A stretch of 64,000 nt of DNA. Source: Anthoceros angustus. Its lineage: Eukaryota > Plantae > Anthocerotophyta. Made by a program: the position numbers and the translations under genes. Positions 1 through 61,813 of the stretch are shown here, piece by piece; position 1 is the first letter of the stretch, and the number at the start of each line of letters is the position of its first letter. The DNA is taken from assembly GCA_010909165.1 (NCBI GenBank), contig MU008151.1, forward strand, positions 1,054,001 to 1,118,000. Reading direction: 5' to 3'. The notes under the pieces are model-generated. The model was not told the origin of the DNA and did no database searches. It saw nothing but the letters and a program-made list of their open reading frames with translations.

Positions 1-666
1 CCACCACTCATTGCATCATTCACGGCTCCCTCGAATCGAGGGTCAAACCCTTGGTCCCTAAAATGGGCCTCATCTTCAATTTCTTCCATGCCCATAGCAA
101 AATCATCCTCGGGATCAGACCTCATTCTCTCAAACATATCAATACACTCGGTCGTGATAACTTGTTCGGAGCGCGACGGAATGGAAAACTCACGGTGAAA
201 GGAATTGAGACTTATCTTGCACGGAGAGCCACACAGCCATTTCGAGATTGTAGGCATGCTTTCAGAAGGACCATGGAATCGAGTAATCGGATGGACATTC
301 TCACCAACAAACTTAACCCCTCTCTCGAAGGACAATAGTTAGTAATCTCGACAAGGGACCCTCCACCAAGGGCAGTCGGGTGTCAACCCTTCTTCTCTTC
401 CGAGCAAATTCAAGAAGACGGGCATCCTCCTTGGATGAAAAGTGCCTTGGCGGTTTGGGAATGGACTTTTCGGCACCAAATATGTCCTCACTATGCACAA
501 GGACACCGTCAACTTTACCATCATCCTGCAGAGGGTGGGTTGCGGTGAACGATGGCTGTTTTAACACGTTGTCGAGTGTACGGCTTGGACATGACTTGCA
601 CAAAGGTGCTTCTTGCCCGTCCAGTGAGGGTTTTCTTTTAGGAGCCATCGCAACAGGAGAAGTCAT
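1..666 (-). pseudogene. N-terminal part of an unidentified, frameshifted gene of the element (basic then acidic region); runs off the window
   Basis: ORF 313-666 (MTSPVAMAPKRKPSLDG...RKRRRVD) continues after frameshifts as VKFVGENVHPITRF...SDPEDDFAMGMEEIEDEAHF. It is preceded by a long T-rich intron-like leader and a minus-strand TATA at 2516-2525. Confidence 0.35.
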
Positions 667-2515
667 GTAACAACGTTGAGATGTACAAACAACATAGGAT
701 AAACGAAAAGAAAGAACTCACATGCGCCTTGAACCGTCCGGATGAGAACTGCTGGAAGGTCTAAAAGTTGATTATCGGCCTGAGACAAGAGAGGATATAA
801 AGGCCCCAAAACACAACTTGGGGCTAGACATTGTTAGAGTTGTTATTCCTTCCACTTTCTTAAGGATGACACATAGAACTGTAAAAATACACCACATATG
901 GGAAAAATAAAGTGAAAACCCTTTTTCAAGTACAACAAGAGTTAGACGTACAAACAACCATAGATGTACAACATATACATCGACCACACAAGTAAAACAA
1001 TCAATCGCTCATTGGACAACAGACTCATCCATGCCACACAACAACACATATTTCTAGATTAGAATCGGAAAACATCCAAAGATGTTGGGAGGCAAACCCT
1101 CAGACGTTGCACACTTCAATACCGCACATAAACACCGGTCTATGAGATTAAGCTCCAAGACATGCACACAATACACCATGCCCAATCCAGATTCACTTTT
1201 CAATAGACACAAGCAGATGAGTGATTACCAAATCTACAAGCGGGTCTTCAACGACAAGCAAAAGAAAGCGTTATCGGATTCGCAAAAGTCAACTTATAAC
1301 GACACAACAAACCACAAACGAGACAACGAAAAATAGATGCAGAGAAGAACAAACAACGCTACACAACGGACAATCAACACTACGAGACAAACAAAGTCAT
1401 TACGAAGTCAAGTAGGATCACATGACAGAAGACAAGAACAAAGTGAGATGATACCATATACAAACCAAAGGACAACAAGGACCATACATAGGGGACACTT
1501 CCAACAAGCAAATAAAAGGATTGTATGAAGGACAAATAAAGATACTATTATCACAAATGCATCGATGAACAAAACTCAACCGCTGCAACACTCAAGCTCT
1601 AAGTCTAAGAAAGTTCGTCGTTTTCATAAAAGGAACGAGGGATCCGTTTCAAAACGGCACCACCATTGACTGGCTTCAACAACAAACACGATGTACAACG
1701 AACAACAACAATACAAAGAACAAGAGGAACGGAGAGCGATCGGCAAAGACAAATCGGATAGCAATTGAGCATCGAGACATCTTCTAGCAATAGACAAGCA
1801 CGCGAAAAGAACAAGATCATCGACGGGGAAAGACACACCGCGATAAGGCCAAGACCGAGCGGGCCGAATACATAACATTGATAAGACCAAAACCGCACAA
1901 ACAACAAGAGCAAAACAATAGACAAGGAGGCAACAGACAACGTAAGCGCAAATGGACAGCGATTTCAAAAGGGAGCGATAGACCTTAACCTTTAATAAAC
2001 CTTGGCCGGTGTCAAAACACCTTGGCCTTGGACTAAGCAACAACCCGGCCTTAGAAGCAAAGACCTTGACCTTCTGAAACCCTTGCCTTCAAAAACAACC
2101 TTCAAAACAGAGCAGCAAACGACCTTTGCCTTCAAAACAAAACTACAGAGACCTTGGCCTTGAAGGCTGGTAAAGGCCTTAGCCTTTGGAGAAGGCTGAA
2201 AGAACTGGGCTCAAAACTTGAACAAAGGCCTTAGCCTAGCATCCTAGAACACCTTGGCCTTAAAGACAACAAAAGGACTTAGCCTTGAGCAGAGCAAACA
2301 ACCTTGGCTCGAAACTAGAACTAGAGCTCCTAAGCCTTGAGCAAAGCTGGATGCACCTTGGCCTACAAAGACAGGCATGCGAAGGCCTTGGCCTTCAAAA
2401 CACAGACGGAATACCTTACCTAAACTAATCAGACGAACGCCTAAGCCCGGAGAGAGGTGGACCACCTAGGCCTTCAAAAGGAAGAAAGAAAAGACCTTGG
2501 GCTTTGGAGAAGCCG

Positions 2516-2790
2516 TTTATATAGGCCACAAACCCTAACCATTCTCCTCCGCCGCCTACCGCTCTCTCTACCAAACTGATTTGAATTAATCAACCTAACA
2601 TTCCGAGAATCCAAACCTACGTGGGCCATTCACGCCGCCTGCTTCAACCAAACCTAGGTTGGATTCCAAACCTAGCCTAACCGCACAAACCTAATCTCCG
2701 AGCTCAAGGCCGGGCGAAGTCAAGCTACCGCCAACCATGCATCGCCACGCGCCACCGAACCATCTAGAACCCTAAGTTTTGTATTTAAAC
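2516..2790. promoter_or_regulatory. Putative bidirectional promoter with minus-strand TATA, telo-box and site II-like motif
   Basis: TTTATATAGG 2516-2525 (CCTATATAAA on minus), AAACCCTAA 2530-2538, TGGGCC near 2622, plus-strand TATTTAAA near 2782. The same layout occurs at 34522-34800. Confidence 0.45.
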
Positions 2791-3849
2791 AAAGCATACA
2801 GGGTTGCTCACTGCCCAACACGCCGCCAGTGCTCTTCACAAGTCGATCTTGACGACCTTTGGCGGTGCATCCGTTCGATCGCGCCGAGTGTGTTCACGTT
2901 TGGCTGGTGTCCTGGGAAGCTCAATCGGCTCCACTTCCCTTCATCTAGGTCGCCCACCACACGTCGATGGGCTCTTTTCGATCGCCTAGTCTTGGTTCCT
3001 TTCAATTGCATGTGTCATTCAATTGCACTCTCCGATATTGGTTCTGCTGGGAACCATCTCATCAAGTTCATGCCCACACCCGGCATCCCACGCTTAGCTC
3101 GCCACCAATTGGACAGTTCGCTTTTGGCTTCCTCCGAGGTGCGACGTCCTACCTCCTCTACTCGCCAGATGTCCAAATTGTCATTGAGTTCCACCACACG
3201 CTTCATGCAGGATCTCCCTCCCGGGCTTTTGGATCCGACCATGTTCTGCCTTGCACCAAGGGTTAGCCGGAAAAGTTCTCTTGTGGGTTATGGTGCTCTT
3301 CCTTTGTTCCCACCCGTCGATCACATCCTGCTTGTGTCTTTGCATACCACGCTGACTGTGGGTTGCTCTCTTGGTCTTGTTTTTCTCGTCATTGTTTTAC
3401 TACATGCCTTGTCCCTTCTACCCACATGGCTTGTCCCCGCCAGTTCCACTCTCTCCTTGGTGTCCGATTGCATCCGAGTACGAGTTTCACGTTGCTTGGT
3501 ATCGAGGTGTAAGCCGAGAGGCTCTTTGCCCGCTTTGCCATAGTTGTCACACACCAGCCCTCTTTTCGTGTTGGCGCATGTGACGATTACTCAAGTTTCT
3601 CTGACTGAAAAGGACCAAGAAATCTCTTGGTCTCCCACATCCTCATTAGTTGGGCATGATTGGTAAACGCATGGAGTTTTGATGGGCTAGTGTTTTCAAT
3701 GCTACATTTGTCATGCACTTAATAAACTCACGACCTCTCCTCCTGAATTCGACAGCCAAAGGTCACGCAAGAAGGCGCCATCCTAGTGTATCGTCCGTCA
3801 CAATAATTCTATGGTCATTTCAACGAGGTGTCCGGAGGGTTGCTAGAAA

Positions 3850-5700
3850 CTAATGCATGATTGGGTTGACCAAGGAGGTAAGGGGTCTGCGCAAAAGAGT
3901 CTCGTTCTTGAAGTCTTTTGAACAACTATCCTCGTAAAACATGCAATCTTGTGTGCGAGTTTGAGAACATATTCGCTTGTTGCTTCCAACAAGTTCGGAT
4001 TGGTGATGACGCTTTTAACAAAATTGATGCGGATCTTAACAATTGGTTTCGCGTGAAGCATAAAACGATCGTGGACGGTAATACCTTGCTCAACCCGCTG
4101 TCGCTTTGCGCACGCCTCACTGATTCGACTTTGTCTTCACTATGATAAGTGTTCATGGCTTTTCATTTGAATCGATGGAATCGACAACTAAAGCAATAAC
4201 GATTTTCAAATCCAAGAAGGTACTTGATTGCTACGATTATACGCTTTACTTTGCTTTTACTTTTACTTTTACTTATATCTATGTGTCAACCCTCAGACAG
4301 AACTCATGACGCCACCGTGAGCGCCATTCGACAAATTACTTCCCACCCATGGGGATCCAGGATATGACGCTAACGCAGAGTTTGAACCACCAACTGGAGA
4401 TAAGAAAGATCGTAGAAAAAGGTATTCGGAAAAATGATTGTTAGTCCCAGATATTCTCGCTGGTCGAGTCTAACAAAACCCGGGTTTGTCCGCGAGCACA
4501 CAATGTTCTCGTGATGGACAAACAAGACCTTAAGCATCTTTGAGATGCCCATTGAATAAGATAAAGAAGGTAACTTTTCCTATTTCATAAACTTGATCTA
4601 AGTATGCTCAATCCAAAATCTTAACCCTAAATTTATCTCTGCAGGATATAAAAAGAACAACAACAATTCAATTGAACCTGAAACGTACACACTTGTGGAA
4701 AGGTTTAATGGACACCGATTTTCAATGCAAACAATGTTGGAGGGATATCAAAGTTCCATCCAGATCGGAGGTAATCAAATTAACATTCATACCTTCTTTG
4801 CTTCTTCACATTTACCTTCTTATAACTTGGCATTACAGAATCTTTGGAAAACAAGTCGCCGCAAAAAATATAAAGGACAAAGTCGATAGATTGACAACAA
4901 CATTGACAACGGCCATCTCCAATCGTATACAAAATGTATTTTGTATTTAATTTGTTTTAATATGATTTTGGTTTAAGAAAGTAATGATTTTGGTTTTGAT
5001 CGTGCAAAAGAGAAAATAGATGACTTCATGGAGAATGGACCAACTTACGTCACAAGAGTTCACCGAGTTTGGAAAGTGGATGAGCAATTTTCAATATCCA
5101 CCACTTTTCAAGACTTTAAATAAGTATCGCAATTTGGGAGCATAGTCTAAAAGAGCAAGCACAGCCCATCTTGAATGAAGATGGGTCCAACCCAACATTC
5201 GAGCAAAAGACAGAGATCCAAGCAAGTCAATAACTTTTCTCTTTCTTATTTTTTTACATATAATCTATGTAATGTAATTGTATGCATTGAATGCGTAGAT
5301 AGGGGCAGCAATTGAAAATAAGGAGTTGAAAACCAGACTTGTTGTCTCTCATGGAAGAACCAGAGACAACTAAAAATATTCAAAAGGTACATCGCTTTGA
5401 AAGATAATATCCGCTTGCATTCCAAGATGAATTCTAATGTTTTATGTTTCTTCGTAACATACGATCACATTTCAGTGTGAATCTTCACAAAGACGTGTTT
5501 AACGCTTGTCGAAAAGGTATATGCAAAGAAAGATCTTCTCCGAATTGAAATGGAGGTAAATGACTAATTACTTTTACTTTTTGTTTGTAGTTATCGGAGA
5601 ATCAAAACGAGTTGTTTTCACTCTTTGAGGTGAGTACTAAAGTTAAAAACAAATATGTTTTATATATGAATTCGACAATGGTTTAAATTGCGTAAATATT
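3850..5700 (+). pseudogene. Decayed multi-exon gene with short introns, product unidentified
   Basis: Series of GT...AG AT-rich introns of about 60-100 bp, e.g. AAG|GTACTT...CTCAG, AAG|GTAACT...CTGCAG, AAG|GTACAT...TTTCAG, GAG|GTAAAT...TTGTAG, GAG|GTGAGT. The exons contain stops. Confidence 0.5.
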
Positions 5701-6127
5701 CTCGCTTGGATGAAATATTCAAATGATTATACATTTATCTGGACCATACAATCAGCAGCTCAAAAGTACTATTCTCAAGAGAAAACACTGAACCATTTTA
5801 CACTCCATCTACTCCAATAGAAGATGAGTAGAATTTACCAAAACTATTTGAATTACCTTACGACAAAAGGAAGGTAATGCTTTTATTGTGTAAAAGGATT
5901 CAAAACGAAAAAAGAAATGAGAAATGACCGTAAGAGAGAGAGAAATGACATATAAGATGGGTGGTTTAGGCACCAAGTCACAGTTCACAGACTCCCGCCT
6001 CCCGCCCCTCCGCAATGGTTGGCGCTGCCCGACTCACCGCCGCCTCACGCCTGTGAACGGGCGCCAAGACGGCCTAGAACGCCCTCGCCTCACGACCGCT
6101 CGCCGTGACGCCTCCGTCTGCTCCCTA

Positions 6128-6990
6128 CACATGGCACTCCCCATCAGAGGGGACGAGGGCATGGCACCTCACCGAGGGAGGGGAGGTGCACCCCACGCGA
6201 GTGTGAAGGAGAAGTCCGGACGTTAAGGTAGCACGAAGGTAACAAGGGTATGTATACTACATGTATGTATGTGGGTAGTATGTAGACTGTGGGTGGCCCT
6301 ACATGGCAGGATGTAGGGTAAGGTGACTCTAATCTGCAGGTAACTAGGTAGACAGATGGCAGGTAGATGTAGGGTGAGGTTCTCACCGTAGGGAGTGGCG
6401 AGTCTCCCACCGTAGGGGAGGGATGAGGTCCCCTACCGTAGGGAGTGGCGAGGTCCCCACCGTGAGGGAGGACGTAGGCATGGCACTCCCCACCGAGGAG
6501 GGGAGGTGCACCCCACGGGAGTGTGTAGGGCGGAGAAGTCCGGACAGGTTGTAGTACGTAGGGTAGTAATGTGAAGTAACAAGGGTATGTATGTATGTGG
6601 GCAGCAGTAGGGTGACTGGTGGCCCTACATGGGCAGGATGTAGGGTGACTCACCAAAGAACTGGGTAGGCAGAGTAGGTAGGGTAGATAGGCAGGCAGGT
6701 GAATGGGTAGGGTGAGAGTGTCTCCCTCACCGTAGGGAGTGATGAGGTCTCCCACCGTGGGAGTGGCGAGGTCTCCCACCGTGAGGGAGGGAGCGAGGTC
6801 TCCCTACCGAGGAGTGGCGAGGTCTCCCTACCGAGGGAGTGGCGAGGTCTCCCACCGTGAGTGAGCCCCACTGGGGAGTGGCGGTCCCCACCGTAGGGAG
6901 GGCGAGTCTCCCACCGTAGGGAGTGGTCTCCCACCGAGGGAGTGGCGAGGTCTCCCGTAGGGAGTGTGAGGTCTCCCCACGTGGGCAGCT
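6128..6990 (+). repeat. Minisatellite of about 21-22-bp units (GGGAGTGGCGAGGTCTCCCACCGT) within a ~350-bp higher-order duplication
   Basis: More than 12 near-identical units at 6385-6470 and 6720-6980. The ATGGCACTCCCC...GGAGAAGTCCGGAC block is present twice (about 6130 and 6480). Confidence 0.9.
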
Positions 6991-15864: not shown

Positions 15865-16603
15865 TGTCACGACTCCCATATCCAATCCGGCACACCTCCT
15901 GTGCTCGGCTCACGGAGAGCTCGACTTGGAAGGAGAAGCACAATGACCCACTGCATATTCAAAGAAACAAGCTTCTCATCCAACAAGTCGGCTTGAACAT
16001 GTTGTTTAACCCGAGGACCTCACGGACTCCTTGCACCGAATGTCGTGAGCGAGAGCTCCACCTCGCCTAGTTTCCCACGCACAAGAGGGGAGTCCTAGGA
16101 AGTGGTGATGGGAGGATTACTTGGTGTGGTCACACCGAGAAGCGGTGGCCGCTCAAGTCCGCTGAGTCCGGTAGTCCTATCTATTCAAATAGGTAGGACT
16201 CAAGTCCTTGGTCTTTGGGGTTTAAGAAGACTCAAGTCCTTGGTCTTGGGTTTGAATGATGTTCCTTGGTCCTTGGGAAAGTAGCAAGTAGATAGAAGCC
16301 TATTTCGAGTCCTTGGTCTTCGGGGTTCGGAAGGATGTTCCTTGGTCCTTGGGAAAATGGTATGTAGATAGAAACCTAGTCCTTGGTCTTCGGGGTTTCG
16401 GAAGGATGTTCCTTGGTCCTTGGGAAAAGTAGCATGTAGATAGAAACCTATTTCGAGGGCCGAGGAAGGCAACTTCCTTGAACCATGGGAATTCCGTTTT
16501 TCTAGATATTGCATGTAGGGCTATATATACATGTTAGGTAGACTGCAGGGGGTAAAATTGGCCGAATCATCAAGGGCCTGGGTGTGAGCATGGTTAGGTG
16601 ACA
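15865..16603. mobile_element. Probable solo LTR (739 bp) with internal ~75-bp tandem repeats
   Basis: Termini TGTCAC...GTGACA (perfect 6-bp inverted repeat). TCCTTGGTCTTCGGGGTT...GGGAAAA...GATAGAAACCTA is repeated about 3 times at 16195-16460. Flanks TACAG/TAATT do not form a clear TSD. Confidence 0.5.
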
Positions 16604-20573: not shown

Positions 20574-21497
20574 GGCCTCCATCTCTTCCTCGCGGCTTGC
20601 TGCTTGCTCCGCCACTGTCACCTTGGTTATTCAGGCATGACCCATGGCTTTCTCCACCGGCTCCGATCACGGTAGTGATCCCACGACCGCCGCGCCTCCG
20701 CCTCCCGCGCCGCCTTCACCAGCCTCGGTCACGGTGTTGATCTAGCTGAGCCACCTCGGCCGTGTCAAGCTGGCGTTTCTCACCGCCTACTCGACCCTCC
20801 GCCTCCTTCGCTCGCCCTCGGGTTTGCCATAGAGGTCTTAGCCCGTTTATGCTTGGGCTCGCGACGCTTCAGCTGCATTCCCATAGCTTGATCTTGGTCC
20901 GGTCTTGTCAACCGCCTTGGGACCTCTCCTCCGCCTCCCGACGCTTTCTCCTTCCTCGACTGCAGGGACTCCGCCTGCCGCCGGGCCTGCCCATCCGCCT
21001 TGAAGTTCACCATCCTCCTCCCGGGTGGCTTCTCCACTTCTTGGGTCTTCTCCGCTATGCCGCAGAGGCCCCAAAGCATCCCTGGGTCATGATGGGGGCT
21101 AGTGGCCAAACTGCTTCTTCCACGGCCTGCTACTGAGATGCCTTCGTAAAGTCCGCTGTGGGCGCAATGGGTATCTCCCGGTCCGGGCTGGCAGGATCAC
21201 ATCGCAGCTCTTGATCCCGGGCCCGAACTCGGACTGGGCCTCTCCTGGAATCACCGTAGTAGGGCCCTTAGGTCCTAGCACTGAGGTCCGAGGCCTCTCT
21301 CTCCTTGGCCCTTCTTGGCCCCTAACTCTTCTCAGCCGCCTCCCCTTCTCCTTCCGGGCTTGGGGGGTGAAGAGACGTCAAGGCCCTTTTCCCTCTCCTG
21401 GGCTTAGAGACTCGGGTGACAGCTCCGCCAGTAGGGCTCCGGCCAAGGGCTCCCCCGCCTCCTGGGCCGCCCCTCTCCGCCCTTCAGCCCTTCGCAA

Positions 21498-24238
21498 GAC
21501 TAGTAGAAACAGAAACGGGGAATATGATAATACGGTTTTATAACGGTTTTGGGCTTATTTGTAGCGTTTGTGACGAGAAGTTAGCGATTTACGGAGTTCT
21601 GACTTGGGTCCCCTAACCCGGAGCCTAGCAAATGTTATAAAATTGTAACATGAAGTGGTGACAAACAAATTTGTTACTTGCCTGAGGTTCTGCAGTCCTA
21701 GGTTTGGTAACCTGGGTTATCAAGGTTTAAAACCCGGGTTACGACAAACCATGGTAGACGATGCGTGACATTTATGTCTCGCACGCCCCCAAGTCCCAAA
21801 TCAAAGGATCCAAGGATGCATATAATTATGCACATCAACGGCATTAGGATTTCGATTCCTTTGGGAACGGCCTTGTGCCGACATGTGGCATGTACATAGT
21901 ACATACTACACGCCATATTTATACATACATAAAATACATATGGCATAAATATATGCTTCTATAATATAAAAATATAGTAATAAAACAAAAATAGAGATTT
22001 TAATTCATCATAAAATGGGCCATGAATGATGAATGACCCATTCATAATGACCCATTCATAAATGGGTCATCATGAATAGGTCATGAATTATGGCCCATTA
22101 TTCACATCATGTATAGCCCATGTTGTGGGCCACGTTCTTTGGTTGAGATCCTAATAATAATTCTTGCCGGATATTTTGACTTATCGCTCATGACAAACTT
22201 AAGTGCCTTTGGATCGTTTGGGTTTTGGTCCACCAAGCTCGTTGCTTTGTCCTTTGGATCTTTTGCTTTGGTCCACTAGGCTCGTTGCTTTGGCCTTTGG
22301 ATCTTTTGGGTTTTGGTCCACCAGTTCTGCTTTCCCCTTAAGAGTACAGGGAGCACAAAACGTGAGCACACGCACAACAACTTGAAATCTATAACAGCAC
22401 AACTACATGAGATCTAGAATTCAAGCACAAAAACTTAAGAACTCGTCATGCCAAAGCTCACCGCTACGCCTTTTTTTCTCATGGCTGCTGCCCTTGCCAT
22501 TGTCCGTCTTCCTCCCCCACTGCCCTTCTTCCTCCCCCACTTTAGAAGTCGCAAAGAGATCATGAACTCGTTATTGGTTCTAAAGCAATTAGCAACAAAC
22601 AAAATAGTAGGCATGCCACTCTACACACACATCACAAGCACATTTGTGCTAGATTCCAAGGCTGAAGGATAGCATACAATTTCAGCATAGTGGAAAGCAA
22701 GACTATGGCTCCCATATGCATAACAACATAACCTACTCAAAGTCACAATTGTGATGGCGCCCATTCTCGATCCTGCAACCCTACTAGCTTGAAGCTTATC
22801 CGGAGAGTTGGACACAAAAGAAGAGGCTGCAACACCGCATCTGCATATCCAAGGAAACAAGCTGTCATCAACCCAATACCCTTCACAAATCAACAACATA
22901 CAATCGGTAGGTGCAAATCGGTGGGATCTAGCGCTCCCTTCACGAGCCGCCATATCTAAGCGGCACGCTCCGCACTGATATCCTCATTGAATTGCAAGCT
23001 TCATAATGAGCTCCCACTGTCCCCAAGGATCGCGCCTCCCCATCCCATTTGCAAGCTCAATGAGCTCCCACCGTCCCAAGGATCGCGCCTCCCCTTGGCG
23101 CAGAAGATGGCGCGCCTCTCCTCCACGCGCATGGGCTACAACCCCCGGAGGAGACACGGTGTTTTCAATGATGTTTAAAGGTTTTGAATATATTTATAAG
23201 CGAACAAGCTTCTTGTATGAAAATCACCTTCGTGAGTTGGTGTACACTAGACTTGCATAGCCGGTTGTCTTTGCGTCGGGTTGGAGTCAAGAGCATTTTA
23301 TTAATTAGAAATAATGCAAAAGGTCATGGGGTGCTACTATTATGTGGTCGGTCGGGTTCACTTGGAGCCAGTCTCATGGGGTTTCATGAGGTGGCCATTA
23401 TTATATTATAAATTTAAATTTCAAAGTCTTATTAGGTTTAATGAGGTGGCGGATATTATATTACAAATTTAAATTTCAAAGTCTCCTCACGGGATGTCAT
23501 GGGTTTGAGACAACCATCTATTATAATTGAAGTTTAAATTTCAAGTCTCCTAGACCTCCAAGTAGGTATTATATTTTAAGTCTCCTAGGGTTTAATGAGG
23601 TACAATTATTATATTTTAAGTGTCTCTTGGTGTTTATGAGGTTGCAACTTTATATTTTAAGTTTGAATTTCAAAGTCTTTAGGTTTAATGATGATATGGG
23701 TTCTAATATTGAATATTTTAATATTAAAATTTAAAAGTTAAATATATTAAATTTTAAGTTCAAATTTTACTTCTAGGGTTCAATTACTATTCGATTTATT
23801 TTATTTCTTCACTCCAAAGTTTAATATTATTAAAATCTAGAAATTATTACAGTTGGTGACGCATGTGTGGAGGGAAAGAAAGAGAATGTGATAAATGTTG
23901 AAGTAGGTGGCACTTTTCATGTGGAGAAAGGAGAGAAGGTAATAAATGTTAAGTTTGGTGAGATGTTGTAGTTGCTTTCTTTTGATATGGGAGATACCAA
24001 GACTAAGCAAAGAAGAAGAGAAATGGATGTAAGGGTGGGAGGCGGGACCCATATGTTATCATTTCAATTGCCTTTGAACATGTGGCACTTCCATTCCATG
24101 CCTCTCTCCCATGCCAAAAGTGTAATATTAAAGTGTTACAAAGTTAGGCTCGTGTCATGTCTCTCTCATGCCAAAGTTTGTTACGCTTTTGAAGACCATT
24201 ATAACCATCGGTAATAAAAGCATAACATCCCCCCGTTT
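21498..24238. mobile_element. CACTA-like non-autonomous insertion with a damaged right end
   Basis: Left end GACTAGTAGAAAC (CACTAGTAGAAA-like) followed by GAAACGGGG; right end CCCCGTTT. CAA flanks both sides (21495-21497, 24239-24241). AT-rich interior with tandem arrays. Family E sequence resumes on both sides. Confidence 0.6.
23400..23700. repeat. ~55-60-bp AT-rich tandem array
   Basis: TTATATT...AATTTAAATTTCAAAGTCT...GGTTTAATGAGG repeated about 5-6 times. Confidence 0.8.
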
Positions 24239-26199: not shown

Positions 26200-27800
26200 G
26201 ACGGTGATCAGGCGCAAAGCTTTGGGGTCGGAATTCTACGGCGGATTTGGTAGCTCGTGGTAGTAGGGGCGTGGCTTTGTGCGGAGGGCGTTTGGGACCA
26301 TCAACCGCGGCGGTGCTTTTCTCGAACGTGAGCGTGTGGTGCTCGTGGATTTGGGAGTTTTGCAGCAGTGCAATAGGGGGTGGTTTGTGCGGAAGGCCTT
26401 TGGGTCCGCCAGCCTGCGGCAAGTCCCGCCTTCCCGGAGCGAGGAGCTGTGCAGCGCCAAAGCGGTGCGCTGGGCGAATCTGACAAGGCAGCCAAAGCAT
26501 TTTGAGGTGAAGGACACCATGTCACTAGCAACGAGTAGGGTGAAGAACAGGTGGCGTGAGCACCGATAATTCCGGCAGTGTCAAGCGCCTGCAACCAAGA
26601 TGGACATGAACGCTTAGGCGCCATCAAGGCTAGGTTGGATAGCCGCAAAGGTGTCGCGGCTCGCAAGGACACGACATTCTCGAAAAATTGTGGGGAGCAT
26701 TGGTGTTGGCACTACGGTGATATGGAATTGTCAACTACGTGTGAATGTGTGTGTCAAGCGCCTGCAAGCAAGATGGACAGAACGCTTAGGCGCCAAATCA
26801 AGGCTAGGTTGGATAGAGCCGCAAAGGTGACTGCCCGCAAGGACACGACATTCTCGAAAAATCTGGGGAGCATTGGTGTTGGCACTACGGTGATATGGAA
26901 TTGTCAACTACAGTGTGAATGTGTGAACTACGTTGGACTAAAGGAGGCTATTGGAGGTGAAGATGAGATCAAGAGGCATTTTGGGGATGTCACTAATGGA
27001 ACGATGGATACCTCTTGGGGATCACACTCACTTCGACATAGAGTGGACGATGTTGATAGTCTTGTTGAGAAGTCAGATGGGCGGCTCCACGGTGCAGATA
27101 AAGGGTGCCACTGTGGCACTTGGGTTCCTAATCGAGAAGAAGCTTGGCAAGCGTGTGAATTGGTTTGAGTACTATTTAGCTGAGAAGAGGAAGGTGGATA
27201 AGGCGATGCGATGGAGAAGAAATCAGTGGAAGTCCCATCTCGAGAATACAACGATTCTTCACAACTGTTGTGGTGGCGGTGATGATGCAGAGCGGAGGTT
27301 GATGTGGAAGAGTGTTCCACTCTGTCAAAGTGAGCCGAGAAACCAGACGATCCTCCCAAAGAATCTGGAGCTCTCCAGAGTTGGGAAGAGGGAAGCACAG
27401 AAGGCCATGAAGAAGGACAGACCTCCGGCTGCAAAGAATGTAGAAGAGGATGCCGGCAAGATGGGAGACGAGCAGTCTCCAATCTGTTGCGCAGCGGCGA
27501 GAAAAGTGATCAAGGCCAAAGCACGTGTACTGAGCCATGGGCACCAAAGGTTGTCATGGATGATGGATTTGGGCAACACCAAGGTCCAGCTTGCCGACAT
27601 GGTCATGAACAGTGGAGGGCTTGACGACGAGTATTCAGAGACTGACAAGATTCAAATTCGTGCTTGACAAAACTAAATATTCCGAGGGTGTTTACCGCTT
27701 GAAGGAGAAAAACGTGAGGAACAAGCTCCGGACACCGGCTTCTCTTGAAAACATGAGGATGTTCTCCAGGCTCAACAGCGTAACATGGATCACTGCGGTG
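26200..27800 (+). pseudogene. Possible decayed gag-protease region of a Gypsy element
   Basis: VRWANL...KHF is gag-like and KVQLADM is protease-region-like; very degraded. Confidence 0.3.
26578..26924. repeat. ~173-bp tandem duplication
   Basis: GTGTCAAGCGCCTGCAA...GGACACGACATTCTCGAAAAAT...GTGAATGTGT occurs at 26578-26750 and 26751-26924. Confidence 0.9.
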
Positions 27801-31649: not shown

Positions 31650-32335
31650 TTACGCACATGTGCTTTCTAGCACAAGGCTCGAGTTGCTTTCTCTTACCAA
31701 GGTGGTCACTCCGTCGAGCTTCCTCTAAAGAATAGCACTCCACACCTTCACTATGTACACCAATTCAATCTTGCAACTTAGGACACGGCATGAAGGGTGC
31801 ACATTCTCTTCTCTGACACAGTGTACGCCGCTGCCGTGGAGTGTGTAATCGCCACGAGACAACCACTTCTCCCACTTAATGTTGAGTTGCTCCAAGGGCA
31901 CCACTTGTTACACAAGAGGGTTTGTTTCAACCGTGTGCAACGCACAAGGTAAAACAATTGCCCCTCGCCTTCGATGTCGGCACAACAAACGATCACCAAC
32001 TTCTAGGAGGTCGGCCATGTCCGACACATCCTCCATAGCATCATCGTCAAGGCCATCAACGTAGTTTCCAAAGCCCTTGTTCCTCCCGAGTAGCAAACCG
32101 CGAAGGTATCCAGACTCAAAGATCCCGGCCTCTTCTCCGAGTACGGCCTTCCGTGGTTGTCCATGTGGCCTAATGGATACGAGTCTCCAGATCCTCGCAT
32201 GGGCGACCACAATAGAGAATGCCGATCAAGACAACAAGACGTATATGCCAACATGCGATTTTCGCTTGAGTTGGGTCCAGAAAAACCATATATGCTATGC
32301 ATTTTTTTCGACCCAGGTATTGGGTCACAATTAAA
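31650..32335 (-). pseudogene. Sola-like transposase copy 2, C-terminal part
   Basis: FNCDPIPGSKKMHSIYGF...CCLD...AHARIWRLVSI...DMADLLEVGD...FYLVRCT; joins in frame to 37674-38194 when 32336-37673 is removed. Confidence 0.7.
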
Positions 32336-32340
32336 CGTAA

Positions 32341-32368
32341 CGTCGCGGCCTCGTCTGGGGCCTCGACG
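32341..32368 (-). other. GC-rich 3' subterminal hairpin of the HLE2-like element
   Basis: CGTCG-C-GGCC-TC-GTCT-GG-GGCC-T-CGACG: CGTCG/CGACG and GGCC/GGCC pair, with a 4-nt loop. Confidence 0.75.
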
Positions 32369-34521
32369 CGCCCGCTTGATTTTTTTTTAGGGAGCAGCAG
32401 GTAGATTCTAGAGAGAGAATTGACCAAAGGTAATTATTTTTTACTGAATAAAGTAAAATTTATTACAATAGGGTAGAAAACATGCCATGTAAGGTAAATA
32501 TAATTCACCATCAATGTTGAAACCAGGGTAGTAAGGTAAAAAATGGGCCACTAAGTGAAAACCATGTAGATCTAAAGAAGCTCATAATAGAAATCCCACC
32601 AACATCAAGTAACCGGCAAAGAAACATTTCCAAATAATATTCATGCGGATCCGGGATATACAAATAACCAAAAAAGAAACTGTTCTTTGCAAAGTTTTTA
32701 GAATGGGATGAAATACAAATTAAAATAATGAAAAGTAACACGTAATAGATTGGTCCCGGACATCGGATCGAAAAGAACAAGCAGAATTATTGATAAAAAA
32801 GTTGATCGCTCAAATTGATTAGACAACTCAAGTTATGGCACGTACGAACTGGTTGATGGGGTATCTTAGCCTAAAGGCACAAAGAAAAATCCAAGGAACA
32901 TCATACAGTTGAACTAATGCACACAAAAAAACAAAGAGTGAAACAGTAACTCTAGAGAGCCATACCATAGACAAACAACAACAACAGAACACACGGACAT
33001 CACAAATGACAGGACAGATAAATAAAAGATATTTCACACTGAACTTTACAACCAGTGAACAAGACCCTTAACAAAAGAAATTTTGAACCTTCAAACACTG
33101 CAAAAAACATTCCAGACCAATAACAGATTGGAGTCCACTAACACAACTCACATCCTACTTGTTGCTCAAGACGCTTAAGGTCCAAAACTTATCAATTTGA
33201 ACTTGTAGACAAACACCAAACGGATCACAAATGATTAAACATGCAAACCGTAGTATAGAATCACGCATGACAACGGGTCAGCAAGATCCACACGTACACT
33301 CAACATGATTATCAAAGACCAAGAAGAAATTGGAAACATAGACACCTAAACTGTAGCATGCAAAAAGGACTTGAAAGAAAACACACACAACGGACAAGGG
33401 GAGCCACACATACACAAACCAAACAAGTTTATGATACCTGACATCAGTAATAAGCGTAAAGAAATTGACCTCCAATGGTCCAGGATGTAACAGTTTTAGT
33501 CTCCGGCCTGCAACCATACAAGGTATAAGCGAAAGGTTCATAATACAAGCACATGGGATGACAACGCAAGAGAGCAAAAAGGTAGCTCTACAACTAAATC
33601 ACAATACGCAATGTAAAAATGCAATGGATCGACAAACCAAACTTTCAATGTCAAGACGAGAAGAACGACATAAGATACATTTGCCAAACTTGCCAGGCTG
33701 AAATGGACTTTAATACTACACTTGAAACAATAGAGAAGCTGTAAGCAAAAAGCAACATACAACTAGCAACAAAGATTTCAAAGATGTACAAAGTCCCAAG
33801 ACTCTGCAAAACACAAAGCTTAAGAGATAAACAAAGAATCGAAGCAAAACATATCCATCAAAGGAAAACTCGAACCAAAGCAGTCTCGTAAAATAGAGAA
33901 CACTTTTGAGATAGAAGCGAAGCACACTTGGAGAACAGCAACATAGGAAAACACTATGAGCTTTCAAGACAGCCAAATACAAGAAAAGAGAGGAAACTCA
34001 AAACACCAGAAACCAACCACGCATCAATAGTGAAGGTCGACAAGCATATTGAAAGCACATGAAAACAAACAAGCTATGGGCTCGGGGTCGGCATTGCGCT
34101 AGAAGCGGCGGCCTTTAAGTGCTAGGGAAAAATTGCTTTCAAGTCCACCACAGACGAAGAGTAAACAATTGCGTGCAGGACCTTACGCGTAAATAACAAA
34201 GAAAGACAAGGCCTGCGAGTGCAGAGCAAAATAAAGAGAAAGACCTCGAAAAGAGCACACATATATGGTAAGAACAAGGAAAAGAGCAAAACACCAAAAG
34301 TTCACAAACACAAGCGGCACAAGCTAGATCGGGAGGACCAGACGCACAAAACCAGCCTCAAGCTCAAGCGCCCTAAACACAAATGATCGCCTGAGCACAA
34401 ATGATCGCCTGACCCACGGAGTAAGACAGAAACCTCAAAGCGACAACGAACGCAAGAGAACCTCGCACAACCAGAGCAGAAGCCGATAAGGGAAAAAGAC
34501 GTTGTAAGTAGAAGAGAGGGC

Positions 34522-34800
34522 TTTTATAGCCTATGAAACCCTAACCTCTCTCACTGTCGGCGCCGACAACCTCTCTCTACCAGACTCACTTCAAATTTAC
34601 CAAACCTACGGTCCGAGGCCAATTTCTGAACCTACCTGCCATCGGGATTGGTGAGTGCCGGCCGCCGCCAAACCCAACCCTAATTTGAATTCACCTAACC
34701 TAAATACCGAACCACCAACAGCTGGAGCGTGAGCCAAAGCGGGCAACCAATAACAGATTGACACGCAGGCAAATCGCTGGAAGCCTCTCGAATAGTCTAC
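34522..34800. promoter_or_regulatory. Second copy of the internal promoter block
   Basis: TTTTATAG 34522-34529 (CTATAAAA on minus), AAACCCTAA 34536-34544, CTCTCTCTACCA...AAACCTAC as at 2516-2790. Confidence 0.5.
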
Positions 34801-35194
34801 CTTCTCTTACTTAAGTCCTCTCCTCAGCTGTAGCTCCTTTCCCAAGTGACTCTGCTTCGCGCTCACATCGCCCACCTGCAGCCGGTCAGCGATCGCCATG
34901 GTTTTGGTTTTGTGGGGTGTTGCTCGTTAGGGGTTGGTGGAACAGATGCTTGGCACCCTAGTTCCCTTGTGCTCCTCGAACGCTACCTCCGGGACGTAAA
35001 CCACCGGTAAGTAGTTTGTCTTCACTTCATTTCATGCCGCTAAGGTCTTCGAGTGCAAGCAATTACAATCAGCCGGCTTGGTATGTTAGAGCTCACGAAT
35101 CAAGATTTGGTCCTTTTCTGGTGGGTCTTGCATCGAATCGTACTGTGTTTCTTACGCTACATACTCATCCATCCGATGTCTCTGGCGCTTTACA

Positions 35195-35580
35195 GTCGTG
35201 AAGAGACGCTCAAGGCACCCCACCATTTTGAACTGGCGTAAGTTTCTTGCTCCCTTGTTGGCCTCTGCTTTCACGTTGGTCGTGCTGGTTTAGGCTTCTC
35301 TTGTAGTTTGGCGTCCTCTCTGTCCTCAGTTTTAAACGTCTGCAGTCTAGGCTGGAATGAAAAAGGGTCTTCTTCCATCGTACTGTCCCTGTCAACATTT
35401 GTACGTTTTCAGACTCATCTTGACTGATGTTATCGCTTACGCAGATTTTGCGAAGAGACGCTAGAAAGCACCCCACCTACGCGTAAGTTGCTTGCTTGTA
35501 AGTTTCTTTCTTGCTCTTGTTGGCCTGATCTTCCTACGTTCGTGGTGCTGGTTAAGGCTTGCTTGTAGTGTGGCGTTTAG
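35195..35580 (+). repeat. ~250-bp duplicated exon-end/intron unit
   Basis: GAAGAGACGCT..GCACCCC...GTAAGTTTC...TTGGCCT...GTGCTGGTT..GGCTT...TTGTAGT occurs twice. Confidence 0.65.
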
Positions 35581-35649
35581 GCTTGTTGTAGTGTGGCTTC
35601 TACAATCTTGATGATTAGAAAAGAAACCTATGACCAGATCCGCTTTCCG

Positions 35650-36600
35650 GAAAATAGTAGCCTGTGGTGTAGAGGGGATCCAGTGAGATGTTGCGCTACC
35701 GCGATTGCCAAGCCGAAATCGCACTAGCCGGCAGGAGCGGATTACCTCCACAGGCGTTCGGCGAGGTCCACAAATTTGATGGCACTCAAATCGCCAAGGA
35801 CGCCAAGACGCTCAAATGTTGTTGAGCTTAAGTCCGTAACTTGAAGGCCCCGAGATGCGTAATCGAGTAAGAGATTGTTCACACCGACGAACGAAATTGA
35901 TTGTTTGGTTCGTGCAAATGGAAGAGGAGAAGTGGGTCCGGAGGAGATGGGTACCGTGAAGGAGGTGATGGCGCAGGAATCGCCAGCCGTAAAGTTCCGC
36001 CACATCAGACCAGCCGAGTGTGCGAAGTGAAGTTCACGCCGCTAGGCGTGACGGACCAAGCTTGTTGTTTTCAAGACGAGCTCGCAGCCGCCTGTGGCAA
36101 TCAAGTCGTGATGGCTCGCCGATTGTTGTTTCAGCGAGCCTCTCGCAAGAACGGGCGTGAAAAGAGAAGGTGGATAGCGCCGCTAAGCGATTGTTGGACA
36201 AATCGGCGTAGTTGAGTTCACTTCTGCGTAATCGAGCATGGCCCCGTGAGTTTGTTGTCGCTCGTAATGATAAAGTTTGTGGATCGCCACGATGTCGAGG
36301 AATGGGACCGCCGAGCTGGTTGTGTTGAGTCCGTGGAGAATCGCCTCGAGCCGATCGGGATGGGGCCTGTGAACCGATTCGATGCAGTCAAGGTAGTAGA
36401 GCAGAGGGATTTGCGAAACTTTGGGAATCGTCGCCAATGCATTCACCGAGGTTGATGTAGCCAAGACCGGGCCGCCCGATTGCGGTGCACCGGGTGAGGT
36501 GGTTGTCGGTATGTCAATGAATTGGGTGTTGTAGATCCGGAACACCCATGCACGGACCGCGACATGGGAGTATGTATGTCTTGATGAAGCCATGCCCTTC
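35650..36600 (-). pseudogene. Plant extracellular LRR (RLK/RLP/PGIP-type) gene fragment
   Basis: Frameshifted LxxLDLSxNxLxGxIP repeats: YLDC..NRFTGPIP, NQLGGPIP, SDNKLTGP, LNYADLSNNRL.GAI, LQVTDLSS, IKFVDLA. CTATATAA on minus near 36675. Confidence 0.75.
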
Positions 36601-37673
36601 CTTCCATAACCAAGAAGCCCGAAAGAAAACGAGCTGGCTAAGTGTCTTTACTTTGACTAACTTGAAACGGCATTATATAGGTCGCTTGAAAGACACGAAG
36701 ACCAAAGAGTCGACCAAAGTGTAACAACTCCATCGCCAAGGTACCATAGCATCCAAGTGTTATCTTTTCTCCTTAGGTGGCCTCAAACAGTTCGTGGTCG
36801 AGGTTTGGTTTATGATGCGGTTCGCTAGCTTTCGTCATTGTTTAAAACCTTTGCGCTTACATTCTTAAAGTAGTTTTTATCCTCACATCCATAAGTTTAA
36901 AGTCGCCAAGATGCCCAGACGATGTCGAAATCTAACAACAAGTTATCGATTGTTTCTATGTACGGCTCGGGCCCCCGAAGAGCCCGCCGATAATCGCTTG
37001 CGTTCTAGGCATTCAAAACGTCTGACTTTTCTATCAGAGAGAAGTGACCGACAAGAATAAAGTAGCCGCAAAACATTATAGCTTTCACCCCGACGATGTA
37101 AGGCAACGCAGTACCTTACAAGTTTTCTTGCATCAAGGTTGCAACAGTTTCCAACATTTTCCAACGCGTTTGTAGGTTTCAGAGAGCCAAAAGGAGTTAT
37201 TCGCACTCTTTGAGGTTAGTGCATGAAATGAAAATGAATTTGGATTCTAATTTAAGACATGTTCGCTCAGAAATATTCTCGTATGGATGAAATCGATAAT
37301 TTTTCCATCCACGCCTGTGGAAGATAATTAGAAAGTTGTAGTAAATAGTTAAGAGTATCCAAGTGAATTGTGAAAACTGCTATTACGTTAAAACCAAGCA
37401 TATAGAAATGTAAAGGTGCTTTCATCGAGAAAGAGGAAAAGAATTATAAGCCTAATTCCAAGCAACAACCGAAGAGATTTCGAATGCATCTCTGCCCCGC
37501 CTCCCGCCTTGGCAGGCAGGCACAAGTGAGAAGGTTCGCCCTGCCCCGCCCCTTATGCTGTGACTTCTACTCCGGACGTTGTCGGGATAAGACGGTTTGG
37601 AACGTCCCAGCCTCTGCTCACTAACGGCCTCGACTGCTTTCTACTGTGACGCCCATGCTTGTCTGCTCCCTCA

Positions 37674-38194
37674 ATACTTGTTCACCTCTCTGCTCACCCT
37701 CGCTTCTCCTAATCAGCCAAGCTCCTATGGACAAGATGCTCTCCACTTCCATCAGACGACAAGCAGAAACAGACCGGGCCGAGATGTTCTCTCTAAGTAA
37801 GTGACAACATCGTAGGCGTGCAGCATCGCAATGAGGAGATATCTTGAGAGGATCAAGCAGCCTGCATCAATGCCCTTTTCAAGATTGCACTGCCTGGCTA
37901 CATGTTCGCTTTTGCCATGCCCAATCGCCAAAATGACCATAGCATCTGCAACCACCAACCAAGCTTAGGTTAATCTGCAACAAAGTAAGAAGGCCTACAT
38001 GCTTTAAATTGACTAGTTTGCCCCATCCGGACTAACACTAATGTTCCTTTTGTGGCACCGAAACCTGCATCGAAGCATCCAATCGCTAATGCAACATGAG
38101 GCAAGAAGGTCGCATAAAAAGGTATCGTGGACCATATCATCACCTGATGTAGAAGTGATAGTATTTGTCGATGTTTGTAGACTCGGCTTTGCCT
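37674..38194 (-). pseudogene. Sola-like transposase copy 2, catalytic core
   Basis: KYYHFYI..DDMVHDTF, DGA.SQFKACRPSYFVAD, MLWSF..GHGKSEH, AILKRAL. Confidence 0.75.
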
Positions 38195-41100
38195 TGACAC
38201 CGTTTAGAGCTCGCCTCAAAGGCTACACTTATCCCACGGTCGTTGAACACGAGGTTCGATCCCAAGAGATTTGGTTCGGATTGCTACAGTCGCTCCTCAC
38301 TCTCTCACTCTCATCACCCGCCTCGCCTACTTGTCCTCGGCAACAAACCGTGTGGTGCGGTTCTGGGTTATCTCGCCCACGCCTCCACGCCTGTGATTCC
38401 TCTCCACCCCAACACTCTCCTATGCCAATTACAACGATCAATTCATCTACAACGACACACCATAGCCAACCTCTTCACCATTCTCAAAAGAAACATAGCT
38501 CACAAATCATCACATACAAACTCACTCATTCGATCCCAAATCTAACTCTCAACGCTCGCTAGCGCACGCCTCCCTTGCAAACGCCTGGGTGACGACTATG
38601 GTATTTCTCTCGGCCGATCACGTACGAACACCGACGCGGCGTAGTCGAGCGCTACCACCGCAGAGGCCAACCCAACAAAGAACACAAAGCACATCCAACA
38701 ACAATCTTTCACGAGAGGAGGACTCTGCTGAGCGAACCCACCGCGAGGGGCCTCCGACCGAACCCCACCCTTCTCGCCTCGCTTGGACGATCACAATCGA
38801 CGCACACAAAGGGATGCGCCAAGAGACGAAGAATGCATGACAAAGCAAGGTCTGTGTTTATTCATTCTTCCACCCTCCCTTTTATAGGTGGGGAGTCGAT
38901 CGCCACTCTAGTTTAATGCTAGGGCGACTTGCCAAGTCCAACAATAGGATCCTTGTCGCCCCTTGCAGTCATCCTCTCGCCTTGGTCCACCACCTTGACC
39001 GTAATATCCTATGTCTACCGCCGCCACTCTTAAATACTCACACTTCCCAAGGTGTGCACCACTTGGGACAAAACGTCCCTAGAAAAGGTCCCACTGACAT
39101 CCCACGTCACGCTTCTTGTTCGCCTCGCAGCCTTCAATGTCTTCCCTTCGATGGGTCGCGGCCTTGCCTCCTCCAGGAGTCTTCACCAGACTCCCTCGGT
39201 AGCCGCCACGCCCCCCTCGGTGGTAGGTCCTCCACTGGTAGGAGGTTCCATTCCTCCCCACTGCTGTCCTCGTAGGTTCCTCCCCATCGTCTTCTTGGTA
39301 GGCGGTCTGCCCCCTACCACTGCTCGATCTCGCTATGGGGGTTCCTTCCTCACACTGGTTTCAGACCGGAGGTACCCTCCGGGGTCACCTCCTCCTCATC
39401 AGCAGTTCCTACCTGAGTAGGAACCTTGGTAGGTACCACCCTACCATCAATCTCCTCCTCCCCTTGATGATAGCTCCACCGCCCCTGGAGGTCCCATCGC
39501 CGAGGTGCTTCTTGACTTGTTTGTTTGGCTATGTCCGCTTTTCCTTGTACCAATCAAAGTTTCAAATTTCCGTGGCCATTCCACTTGGTGTCGTAATGAG
39601 GTCTGCTTTCTTCGCCTTCCTCACCGTAGGCTTCCTCAATCGCCTAGGAGGTTGTTGTATAGGTCGCCACCCTACCACTCTCCTTCTTTGTGCGCCCATG
39701 ATGCGGACCCTTAGTGGGATGACGACTCGTCCCACCCGGCCCGATTTGTCACTCCTACCAATGCGGCCTTTCTCCACTACCGCCCTCCAACCTGTGGCAA
39801 GTCTCCCAATCTCCTTATCTTCTCCATGGCTTCCATCGCCATGCGTTTCACTATGGCGCAGCCTACCGCTCCTCGAATGACCAAGACCTCCAAAGATCCA
39901 TTAAAACTTCCTTCCGCAGTTCCTTGCCTCCGCCTCATAGGCGTGGTAAGGTCGTCCCTTCTGCGTTGCTCCAAAAGTTCTCTCGTAATGAAGCTCCTCT
40001 TTGTGACCCTTGGTCACATTGTCCCATCCTTGTCGCCTTCACCAAGTCGTCGATTTTCCCTTGTAATGCTCCTTCCGTTGCTCCATGGCAACTAACTTCT
40101 TTCGTAGGAGGTCCTTCTCGCCTTCAAGGTCCCGGCCTTGTTAGCCGAGATGCCGCCTCCTCCTGCTCGAATGCCTCCTACCCTTGCTAGCTTCCAATTT
40201 CTTCCGCCTCCTTCCCGGCTTTCCAACTCTCACCCTCTTGGCTGATTTTGCCTCCGTAAGACCGGTCAATCATTTCCCACACATTCACCAACTTGGTCAT
40301 CCCGTCGCTCTTTGGCCGATCTAGCACGGAGTGTTGCTTCTGAGGTGGTTTCGAGCTCCTCTCAATTTCTTCTGGCCTCCTCCTCAGAGGTCTCAAGTTC
40401 AAACGGCCACCTCCGACATTGTCCACTAGGGCGTCCATAGATCCCGCGCCCACTTCCTCACCAAGAACTCCGTAGGATGCCTAGCTCAAACACTTCCTAC
40501 CTCCTCCTGCTGGTGCGAGGTCACCAACGCCTCGGCTCTTCCCACACCTCCAGCAAGTCCACACGTTACCTCTTGGTAGGAGGTAAAGCTCACCGTAGGT
40601 CCTCCATCCTCCTGGTCCCACCAGGGGGTCTCTCCTACACCGGTGTTGTTGGCCTACCAATCCTCAACCTCCGTAGGTGGTCTCGTATCCTTTCCTCCTT
40701 CCTCCGTAGGAGGTCTTCTATGGCCTTCTTCTTGTTGGGTCTCGATCCCGAGGCCTCATGGTTCGGGGCGTGGCGGCCTCTTGCCCAGGGCCTCCGCCTC
40801 TGCTCTTCATCCTCTCGGGCTGGATGGCCCCCTTCCACTACCCTCACCGTAGTAGCTTCTATCTTGGCTTCTTCCACCGAAGAACCTCCTCCTCCGATAT
40901 AGGTGTACGAGGAAGGTAGAGACAAACCGATTCTTGCCCTCCATCCATCACCAAATGGTTCGTGCGCAATCACTGCTCATACGTAATGGTGGCCCAATCC
41001 ACCAACTTCCCTCGACATCTCATATATCATCATTAAATGGGAATTTCCTGTGCACGCCTTCCGCCACACGTTAGTCCCAGCCATATCTTGGCGAATAAAT

Positions 41101-61500: not shown

Positions 61501-61813
61501 AATGACTCATGGCCGCCCTATCCAAAACAATGAAACCTTTAGAAACCGTGAGGAATTCTCAACTGAGCTTGGTTCTTGTGCAAATGATATCCTCCTCGTA
61601 GCTATGTGTGCCCTCTTTGTTTCGGTGAATTAGACCCTTGCCTGCCTCTCCTCGTAATTCCTCTTCACAATTCCTTGCACATGCAGCCGGCTTCTCGAAC
61701 AACTCTCGCCTTAGCATGTGCAAGATCCCATTCTGAATTTGGCCCCAAGCATCTTGTGTCCTTCTTCACAGCACTGCAATCAGCTTCCAACGTGTGTGAA
61801 TTTAAGACACACA

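Follow-up and report, generated by a model that had tools for sequence, protein, structure and literature searches.

Within the window (the whole stretch analysed, 64,000 nucleotides of contig MU008151.1 of Anthoceros angustus), a decayed Sola2-like transposase is split by an inserted element, and a second, diverged member of the same family lies at the left edge (Table 1). The host motifs are collinear, and the order of those in its catalytic core (D..H / SDG..FK / HGK), as well as their spacing, agrees by eye with that of Sola2_DFa-2 and Sola2_PPa-1. The first Sola2 motif (DFxEN) was not found on the minus strand within the window. A word search and a metagenome scan returned no homologue of the host, and there was no database match; the sole match of the full HMMER scan, P0001, is a repetitive bacterial protein that we set aside as a false positive.

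Table 1. Features of the inserted element, its host and the second family member (positions in the window).
Feature	Position	Strand	Remarks
Host, upstream half: decayed Sola2-like transposase core	37675..38195	-	YHFYI..DD.VHDT, DG..SQFK, GHGKSEH and YDVV motifs, in shifting frames; comparison with Sola2 proteins made by eye
Host, downstream half of this transposase	31700..32335	-	from FNCDPIPGSKKMH onward; left limit approximate
Inserted element, about 5.34 kb	32336..37674	-	5' end 37673 or 37674; 3' end 32336 or 32335; alternative (M3) 32332-37671
5' asymmetric inverted repeat	37663..37674	-	9-bp core AGGGAGCAG at 37671-37663; 11/12 match to 3' copy if the end is 37674
Inverted repeat, 3' copy	32386..32397	-	core 32397-32389, 53 nt before the 3' end; continues into an A9 tract
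3' hairpin	32341..32368	-	9 pairs with one mismatch; loop of 8 nt; TTACG follows
AT-rich block	37168..37290	-	conserved with second member (5583-5710); best part 81% over 53 nt
Decayed reading frame	35745..36647	-	301 codons, 2 stops (154+46+99 aa); no relatives detected
Promoter-like block	34515..34620	-	shared with second member (2520-2607); telo-box AAACCCTA at 34536-34543 beside a TATA-like motif
T-rich tract (43% T), intron- or UTR-like	32400..34200	-	
Second, diverged member	1..6129	-	5' end TGTAGGGAGCAGAC at 6129; extends past the left edge of the window; decayed ORF starts near 648-666

That the element is a genuine insertion, as the first-pass annotation had proposed, is borne out on the minus strand, where removing 32336-37673 rejoins the split transposase frame as EVNKYFNCDPIPGSKKMH. 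The same annotation held that this restored frame fixes exact, TSD-free ends, a claim for which we find no support. Dozens of alternative deletions at the locus keep EVNK...DPIPGSKKMH in frame, and at least three frame-keeping junctions are plausible, which we call M1, M2 and M3. M1, the earlier choice, deletes 32336-37673 at a T^T site, in a frame with a stop codon 13 codons upstream. M2 deletes 32336-37674, one nucleotide more, so that an open stretch of 64 codons (37675-37866) runs on into the downstream piece; under M1 and under the shifted M2 alike, the element sits between two Ts. M3 deletes 32332-37671 at a 4-bp ATTG direct repeat, keeps the M1 frame and reads EVNKYCD. Because the flanking gene changes frame several times within 1 kb, the frame is a weak ruler for the ends. 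No empty site, that is, an uninterrupted host homologue, was obtained from the word search, the full HMMER scan or the metagenome scan, and the window holds a single 3' end, so that the ends are not fixed by comparing copies.

The structures that had been described near the ends are all present: a 9-bp repeat 2 nt inside the 5' end (taken as in M1), its inverse copy some 53 bp before the 3' end, and a hairpin 5 nt from that end. The inverted repeat can be read as 9 bp perfect or as 12 bp with one mismatch, and it lies 0-3 nt from the 5' end depending on the junction. Among random position pairs from the window, a repeat of at least 9 bp in such a geometry has P=0.001 and a comparable hairpin P=0.008, values that are somewhat optimistic since these features themselves helped in choosing the ends. 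The folding energy of the 3' hairpin is by itself unexceptional (z -0.9 to -1.3). At the 5' end, no stable hairpin was found in the 32336-37674 copy (z +0.6), and the second member has no more than a 4-bp stem. The element has the ends 5' TG/TT and 3' TTACG; a 5' terminal T is present under both M1 and M2, and the second member starts with TGT.

Motif spacing in the host bears on where the element stops. The DV-to-PG distance is 52.0 codons under M1, compared to 52 residues, counted by eye, in Sola2_PPa-1; it would rise to about 70 were the 53-nt tail part of the host, and it is 50 codons under M3. This spacing also bears on whether the locus might instead contain a cut-and-paste TIR element of PIF/Harbinger or Sola2 type, with TIRs GGGAGCAG...CTGCTCCC, beside an unrelated 53-56-bp hairpin insertion. 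GGG-like termini occur in both of these superfamilies, the inverted repeats are perfect over 8-9 bp, and the flanks TGA and TAA are one change away from a TWA-type duplication. However, no identical 3- or 4-bp duplication surrounds the repeats (TGA/TAA, TTG/AAA), the second member has GTA or TGT at the same place, and the spacing indicates that the tail is not host, so that two events at one site would be needed. We consider this arrangement very improbable, and plain TIR elements were rejected for want of a matching flank duplication and because of the 53-nt non-host tail.

The second member retains the same 5'-tip 11-mer and aligns to the 32336-37674 element over about 95 nt, with no protein similarity between the two interiors. 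Its TGT is unmatched in paralogous host units, and the element therefore seems to start 3 nt before AGGG; if each member starts there, both 5' tips are an 11/12 match to the 3' repeat. The ends known for the family within the window are two 5' ends with unrelated flanks and one 3' end. As to the T-rich insertion of the first-pass proposal, the first copy is compatible with T^T, but the 5' flank of the second is GCCATG, within a GC-rich repeat. The CCCTAC shared at this flank suggests that the junction may be secondary.

This second copy also helps in weighing M3, under which the insertion would be a passenger bounded by direct repeats (32332-37671, ATTG on both sides): a Crypton-like tyrosine-recombinase transposon, moved as a circle recombined at a short repeat, or a Replitron, moved by a Y1 HUH Rep. 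ATTG does occur at both ends, and the frame is preserved if one of the two copies is removed. Cryptons lack TIRs and end in direct repeats of 4 or 6 bp (PMC3212892); Replitrons are abundant in non-seed plants, and their termini carry short direct repeats and possibly a hairpin at the right end (PMC10288648). Nevertheless, we regard this origin as unlikely. With a few dozen plausible pairs of ends, a 4-bp match often arises by chance (5-15% as a rough estimate), the second member has GTGT where ATTG stands in the first copy, with a start that seems to lie 3 nt before AGGG, and the 50-codon spacing departs from the 52 of Sola2_PPa-1. Asymmetric inverted repeats are a defining trait of neither class, and Replitrons were not detected in hornworts (PMC10288648). 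No tyrosine recombinase was found in either copy, and the Y1 Rep motifs HUQ and GYxxK occur in the two copies only as isolated chance matches.

In the interior of the element, the putative promoter block with its telo-box and TATA-like motif lies ahead of the T-rich tract. The equivalent of this tract in the second member leads to an ATG, and in the 32336-37674 copy it reaches the 3' end instead. Neither copy contains a RepHel gene or any transposase, nor is there a RepHel elsewhere in the window. The internal frames had no matches in Pfam, PHROGs, PDB, Atlas or homologue searches, in which short frameshifted pieces were queried apart, lowering sensitivity; the proteins of the window were absent from the 15-billion collection, and Rfam and tRNA searches returned no matches. 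Single-sequence fold predictions gave a pLDDT of 35-37. By eye, the 99-aa piece resembles what we take to be an RPA-like OB fold, a likeness supported by no tool. Searching with the shared 5' pattern returned 1 viral and 20 metagenome matches, most of them GC-rich and none similar beyond the pattern. We treated these as chance matches rather than further copies; the closest (L020) lies within an ORF and shares nothing past the pattern.

Taken together, the shape of the ends suggests that the older Sola2-like transposase was probably interrupted by a non-autonomous rolling-circle transposon of the Helitron2/Helentron type (HLE2). Because no RepHel gene was found, it is from this shape that membership in HLE2 is read. 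Short asymmetric inverted repeats of the HLE2 size (8-16 bp) are present, with the 5' copy in the expected range of 0-4 nt from the end, the 3' repeat at 53 nt (20-60 nt expected) and followed by the hairpin, and a T at the 5' terminus. The 5' hairpin listed with the 5' repeat as a Helitron2 feature by Bao and Jurka (PMC3627910) is absent, but the canonical HLE2 structure in HELIANO does not include one (PMC11417382). Of the first-pass interpretation, the HLE2-like assignment stands as the best reading, as the geometry fits published HINE and Helitron2 ends and a second member has the same 5' tip, while its exact TSD-free ends are unproven.

The evidence can also be read as an unclassified DNA transposon that merely converged on HLE2-like ends and was mobilized by some enzyme with no known link to such ends, a reading that we think improbable. 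No enzyme was identified, the encoded frames all lack relatives, the flank of the second copy breaks the T-rich rule and there is no 5' hairpin. On the other hand, the geometry is a close fit to a known class, and the blank searches carry little weight given the short frameshifted pieces and that they also missed the clearly Sola2-like host. A more far-reaching version, to which we give a slightly smaller chance still, would be an undescribed class mimicking HLE2 ends: a non-seed-plant family of large gene-carrying elements in which the 5' tip, AT-rich block and telo-box promoter form a constant chassis, the carried genes can be exchanged and belong to no known family, and movement depends on an enzyme that is not RepHel and has no strict T target. 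Most likely, the element is an ordinary new family of the already known rolling-circle group.

By analogy with what is known of Helitrons, a RepHel protein (HUH endonuclease and PIF1-like helicase) from another copy would nick one end and peel off a single strand, halting at the repeat-plus-hairpin signal of the other end. Joining of this strand into a T-rich target would involve no staggered cuts and so leave no duplication. Judging from the second member, the 32336-37674 copy may have arisen by internal deletion, retaining the 5' half together with the promoter block and its long leader but losing the gene behind them.

The novelty of a land-plant HLE2, implied by the first-pass annotation, is overtaken by the literature: Helitron-5_SMo of Selaginella, named Helitron2 in 2013 (PMC3627910), is a land-plant precedent, and HELIANO, a tool built for such ends, reported HLE2 in 13 land-plant species including Sphagnum in 2024 (PMC11417382). 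If the HLE2 reading is true, it adds one more such family to a plant repeat library and may extend HLE2 to hornworts, for which we found no paper stating its occurrence (the HELIANO species table was outside our search). Because HELIANO does not detect a family when the genome contains no RepHel copy of it (PMC11417382), manual curation of this kind has some practical value. Knowledge of rolling-circle transposition would be unchanged; the element would matter more only if its moving enzyme were not RepHel or if the carried frames were a new protein family.

Among known systems, Cryptons (PMC3212892) and Replitrons (PMC10288648) resemble the element in having no symmetric TIRs and, under M3, in the 4-bp direct repeat, and Replitron-1 in its possible right-end hairpin (PMC10288648); unlike them, the family does not share ATTG, no recombinase or Rep is seen, and asymmetric inverted repeats are not their hallmark. 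Canonical Helitron1 (HLE1) likewise has a 3' hairpin, and junction M2 allows an A^T reading, but HLE1 was rejected, as the element has no 5' TC or 3' CTRR and possesses inverted repeats. With Helitron2 (Bao and Jurka, 2013, PMC3627910) the element shares 8-15-bp asymmetric inverted repeats, a 5' T and a 3' repeat upstream of a hairpin; the Helitron2 repeats lie 0-2 bp from the 5' T. The element differs in the missing 5' hairpin, in a 3' repeat that sits further in (53 nt from the end, against 20-30 nt), in a left flank that is not TTTT and in having no RepHel to place in a tree. Non-autonomous Helentrons, HINE and DINE-1 (Thomas et al., 2014, PMC4067079), also have a subterminal inverted repeat a few nucleotides from the 5' end, a 3' stem-loop and no transposase, and their T-rich site with ambiguous terminal Ts is compatible with the first copy. 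In mite HINEs the repeats measure 12-15 bp, the 5' copy lying 2-4 nt and the 3' copy 38-60 nt from its end; the latter range includes our 3' repeat, and the terminal Ts are variable (PMC4067079). In contrast to HINEs, the repeat here (9 bp if perfect, 12 bp if imperfect) is no palindrome, the hairpin is 5 nt from the end (8-35 nt in mite HINEs), and the element is a 5.3-kb plant insertion with a decayed gene, a promoter block and no identified partner. The HLE2 families of HELIANO are anchored on RepHel, whereas this element is not. Compared by description, land-plant HLE2 such as HelenSM92 of Sphagnum magellanicum (Li et al., 2024, PMC11417382) share with it short inverted repeats, a stem-loop after the right repeat, additional carried genes and compatibility with T^T insertion.

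The insertion of copy 1, a ~5.34-kb element, is real. Its two flanks carry the motifs YHFYI..DD.VHDT, DG..SQFK, GHGKSEH, YDVV and IPG...H in shifting frames, in an order that, compared by eye, agrees with the Sola2 proteins in the PMC3627910 supplement. With 32336-37673 removed, the DV-to-PG distance is 52.0 codons, matching the 52 residues of Sola2_PPa-1 (PMC3627910 supplement); counting the 53-nt hairpin tail between the 3' repeat and the 3' end as host DNA would bring it to ~70 codons. This spacing and motif order, judged against one distant homologue, indicate that the flanks are halves of a single Sola2-like gene and that the tail belongs to the insert. The alternative of a TIR element beside an independent small insertion seems very improbable. 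Database searches gave no confirmation of the host identity, and the first Sola2 catalytic motif was not found on the minus strand in the window. The host motifs end near 38195, and the sequence from there to ~43000 looks like a nested retroelement.

The first-pass annotation had taken the restored reading frame to define exact ends. Many deletions preserve the frame, three of them plausible (M1 to M3, see table), and because the host gene carries several frameshifts, the frame is unable to choose among these. The M1 frame meets a stop 13 codons upstream. Under M2, the inverted repeat becomes 12 bp with one mismatch, beginning at the first base, and its offset of 3 nt equals that of the second member (copy 2). 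A T^T insertion fits both M1 and a shifted M2. The ends are thus not exact but placed to about 1 nt, with a duplication possible.

Coordinates of the candidate junctions of copy 1 and of other features in the window
Feature	Position	Strand	Description
M1	32336-37673	minus	First-pass junction; T^T insertion
M2	32336-37674	minus	Links 64-codon open stretch to downstream host piece
M3	32332-37671	minus	ATTG flanks both sides; M1 frame; 4-bp duplication
3' hairpin, copy 1	32368-32341	minus	
CGAGGCC, copy 1	37632; 32365, 32353	minus	Once near 5' end; twice in 3' hairpin
Decayed frame, copy 1	36647-35745	minus	301 codons, two stops
Direct duplication, copy 1	35200-35314, 35452-35576		~120 nt, 75% identical, downstream of decayed frame
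Decayed ORF, copy 2	1-666	minus	Begins MAPKRKP after T-rich intron-like leader; exits window
Open frame, copy 2	2779-3543	plus	254 codons, divergent from telo-box block
GC-rich array	6130-6980		~24-nt units, including CTCCCTAC, which resembles the element's tip; higher-order 320-nt duplication; directly adjoins copy 2
Direct repeats	9116-10187, 12917-13886		~1 kb, 79% identical, internal GGCCCAAGG arrays; probably old LTRs
Short tandem arrays	14095-14706, 16232-16457, 23371-23770, 26578-26925		Periods about 95-173, 76, 55 and 173 nt
Tandem duplication	18871-20580		~870 nt; 88% identity overall, 99% in parts
Longest window ORF	61780-62856	minus	358 aa; integrase core (Pfam rve) matched weakly, E=0.03, short of the cut-off

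Read along the minus strand, AAGTAT-TGAGGGAGCAGAC spans the left junction and CTGCTCCCT-A8-...-hairpin-TTACG-TTTAATTG the right one. The 9-mer at the 5' end, the inverse copy located 53 nt before the 3' end and the hairpin lie where the first-pass annotation had placed them. Among random position pairs drawn from the window, an inverted repeat in this geometry has P=0.001 and such a 3' hairpin P=0.008, values that are somewhat optimistic because the choice of ends was partly guided by the same features. The combination of repeat and hairpin exceeds chance; the folding energy of the hairpin by itself is unexceptional. The CGAGGCC motif is not present at the 5' end of copy 2.

Copy 2 has its 5' end at 6129 (TGTAGGGAGCAGAC) and aligns with copy 1 across about 95 nt. 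Two internal blocks, one AT-rich and one telo-box/TATA-like, are common to both in the same order, with no protein similarity between their interiors. A long T-rich tract follows the second, promoter-like block in each. In copy 2 this tract is succeeded by an ORF (near 648-666) running out of the window; in copy 1 it continues into the 3' end, the only one of the family within the window. We infer that internal deletion gave rise to copy 1. The flank of copy 2 is a GC-rich repeat unit whose last bases are GCCATG; paralogous units go on with CC, so TGT is part of copy 2 and its target is not T-rich. A shared CCCTAC suggests that its junction may be secondary.

Copy 1 is more than simply non-coding: its decayed frame has P=0.001 in shuffles and ranks among 1% of window frames. 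Pieces of it, searched separately, found no relatives in any library tried, and their predicted folds have pLDDT of about 35. The copy 2 ORF had no match in Pfam, PHROGs or Atlas, and the divergent frame, for which copy 1 has no equivalent, none in Pfam or PHROGs. Neither copy shows a recognisable Rep, helicase, recombinase or DDE gene; these blank searches are weak evidence, since the same tools failed to detect the Sola2-like host. That copy 1 is a direct-repeat class element, a Crypton or Replitron, appears unlikely, and we give equally little credence to an unclassified element. The sequence just outside the window, into which the copy 2 ORF continues, may hold the family's enzyme.

We consider it fairly likely that a RepHel from another locus moved copy 1. 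Encoded elsewhere, this protein would copy the element via single-strand peel-off, the repeat-plus-hairpin would serve as end signal, and the peeled strand would be joined to a T-rich target. What the sequence shows directly is the anatomy; the enzyme and chemistry we infer from the Helitron2/Helentron (HLE2) class.

HLE2 elements occur in 13 land-plant species according to HELIANO, with Sphagnum HelenSM92 as worked example (PMC11417382); we found no description of hornwort HLE2 in the literature, which is weak evidence of absence. The definition of Helitron2 calls for asymmetric repeats of 8-15 bp together with a hairpin at the 5' end, with Helitron-5_SMo of Selaginella among the named examples (PMC3627910). 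Copy 1 lacks this 5' hairpin, and Helitron2 in its strict, two-hairpin meaning would be the wrong label for it. The nearest match to its end layout is the mite HINEs, which have variable terminal Ts and whose repeats sit 2-4 nt inside the 5' end and 38-60 nt inside the 3' end (PMC4067079). Together, these comparisons suggest that copy 1 works like an HLE2 passenger, and that it probably represents a non-autonomous HLE2 family.
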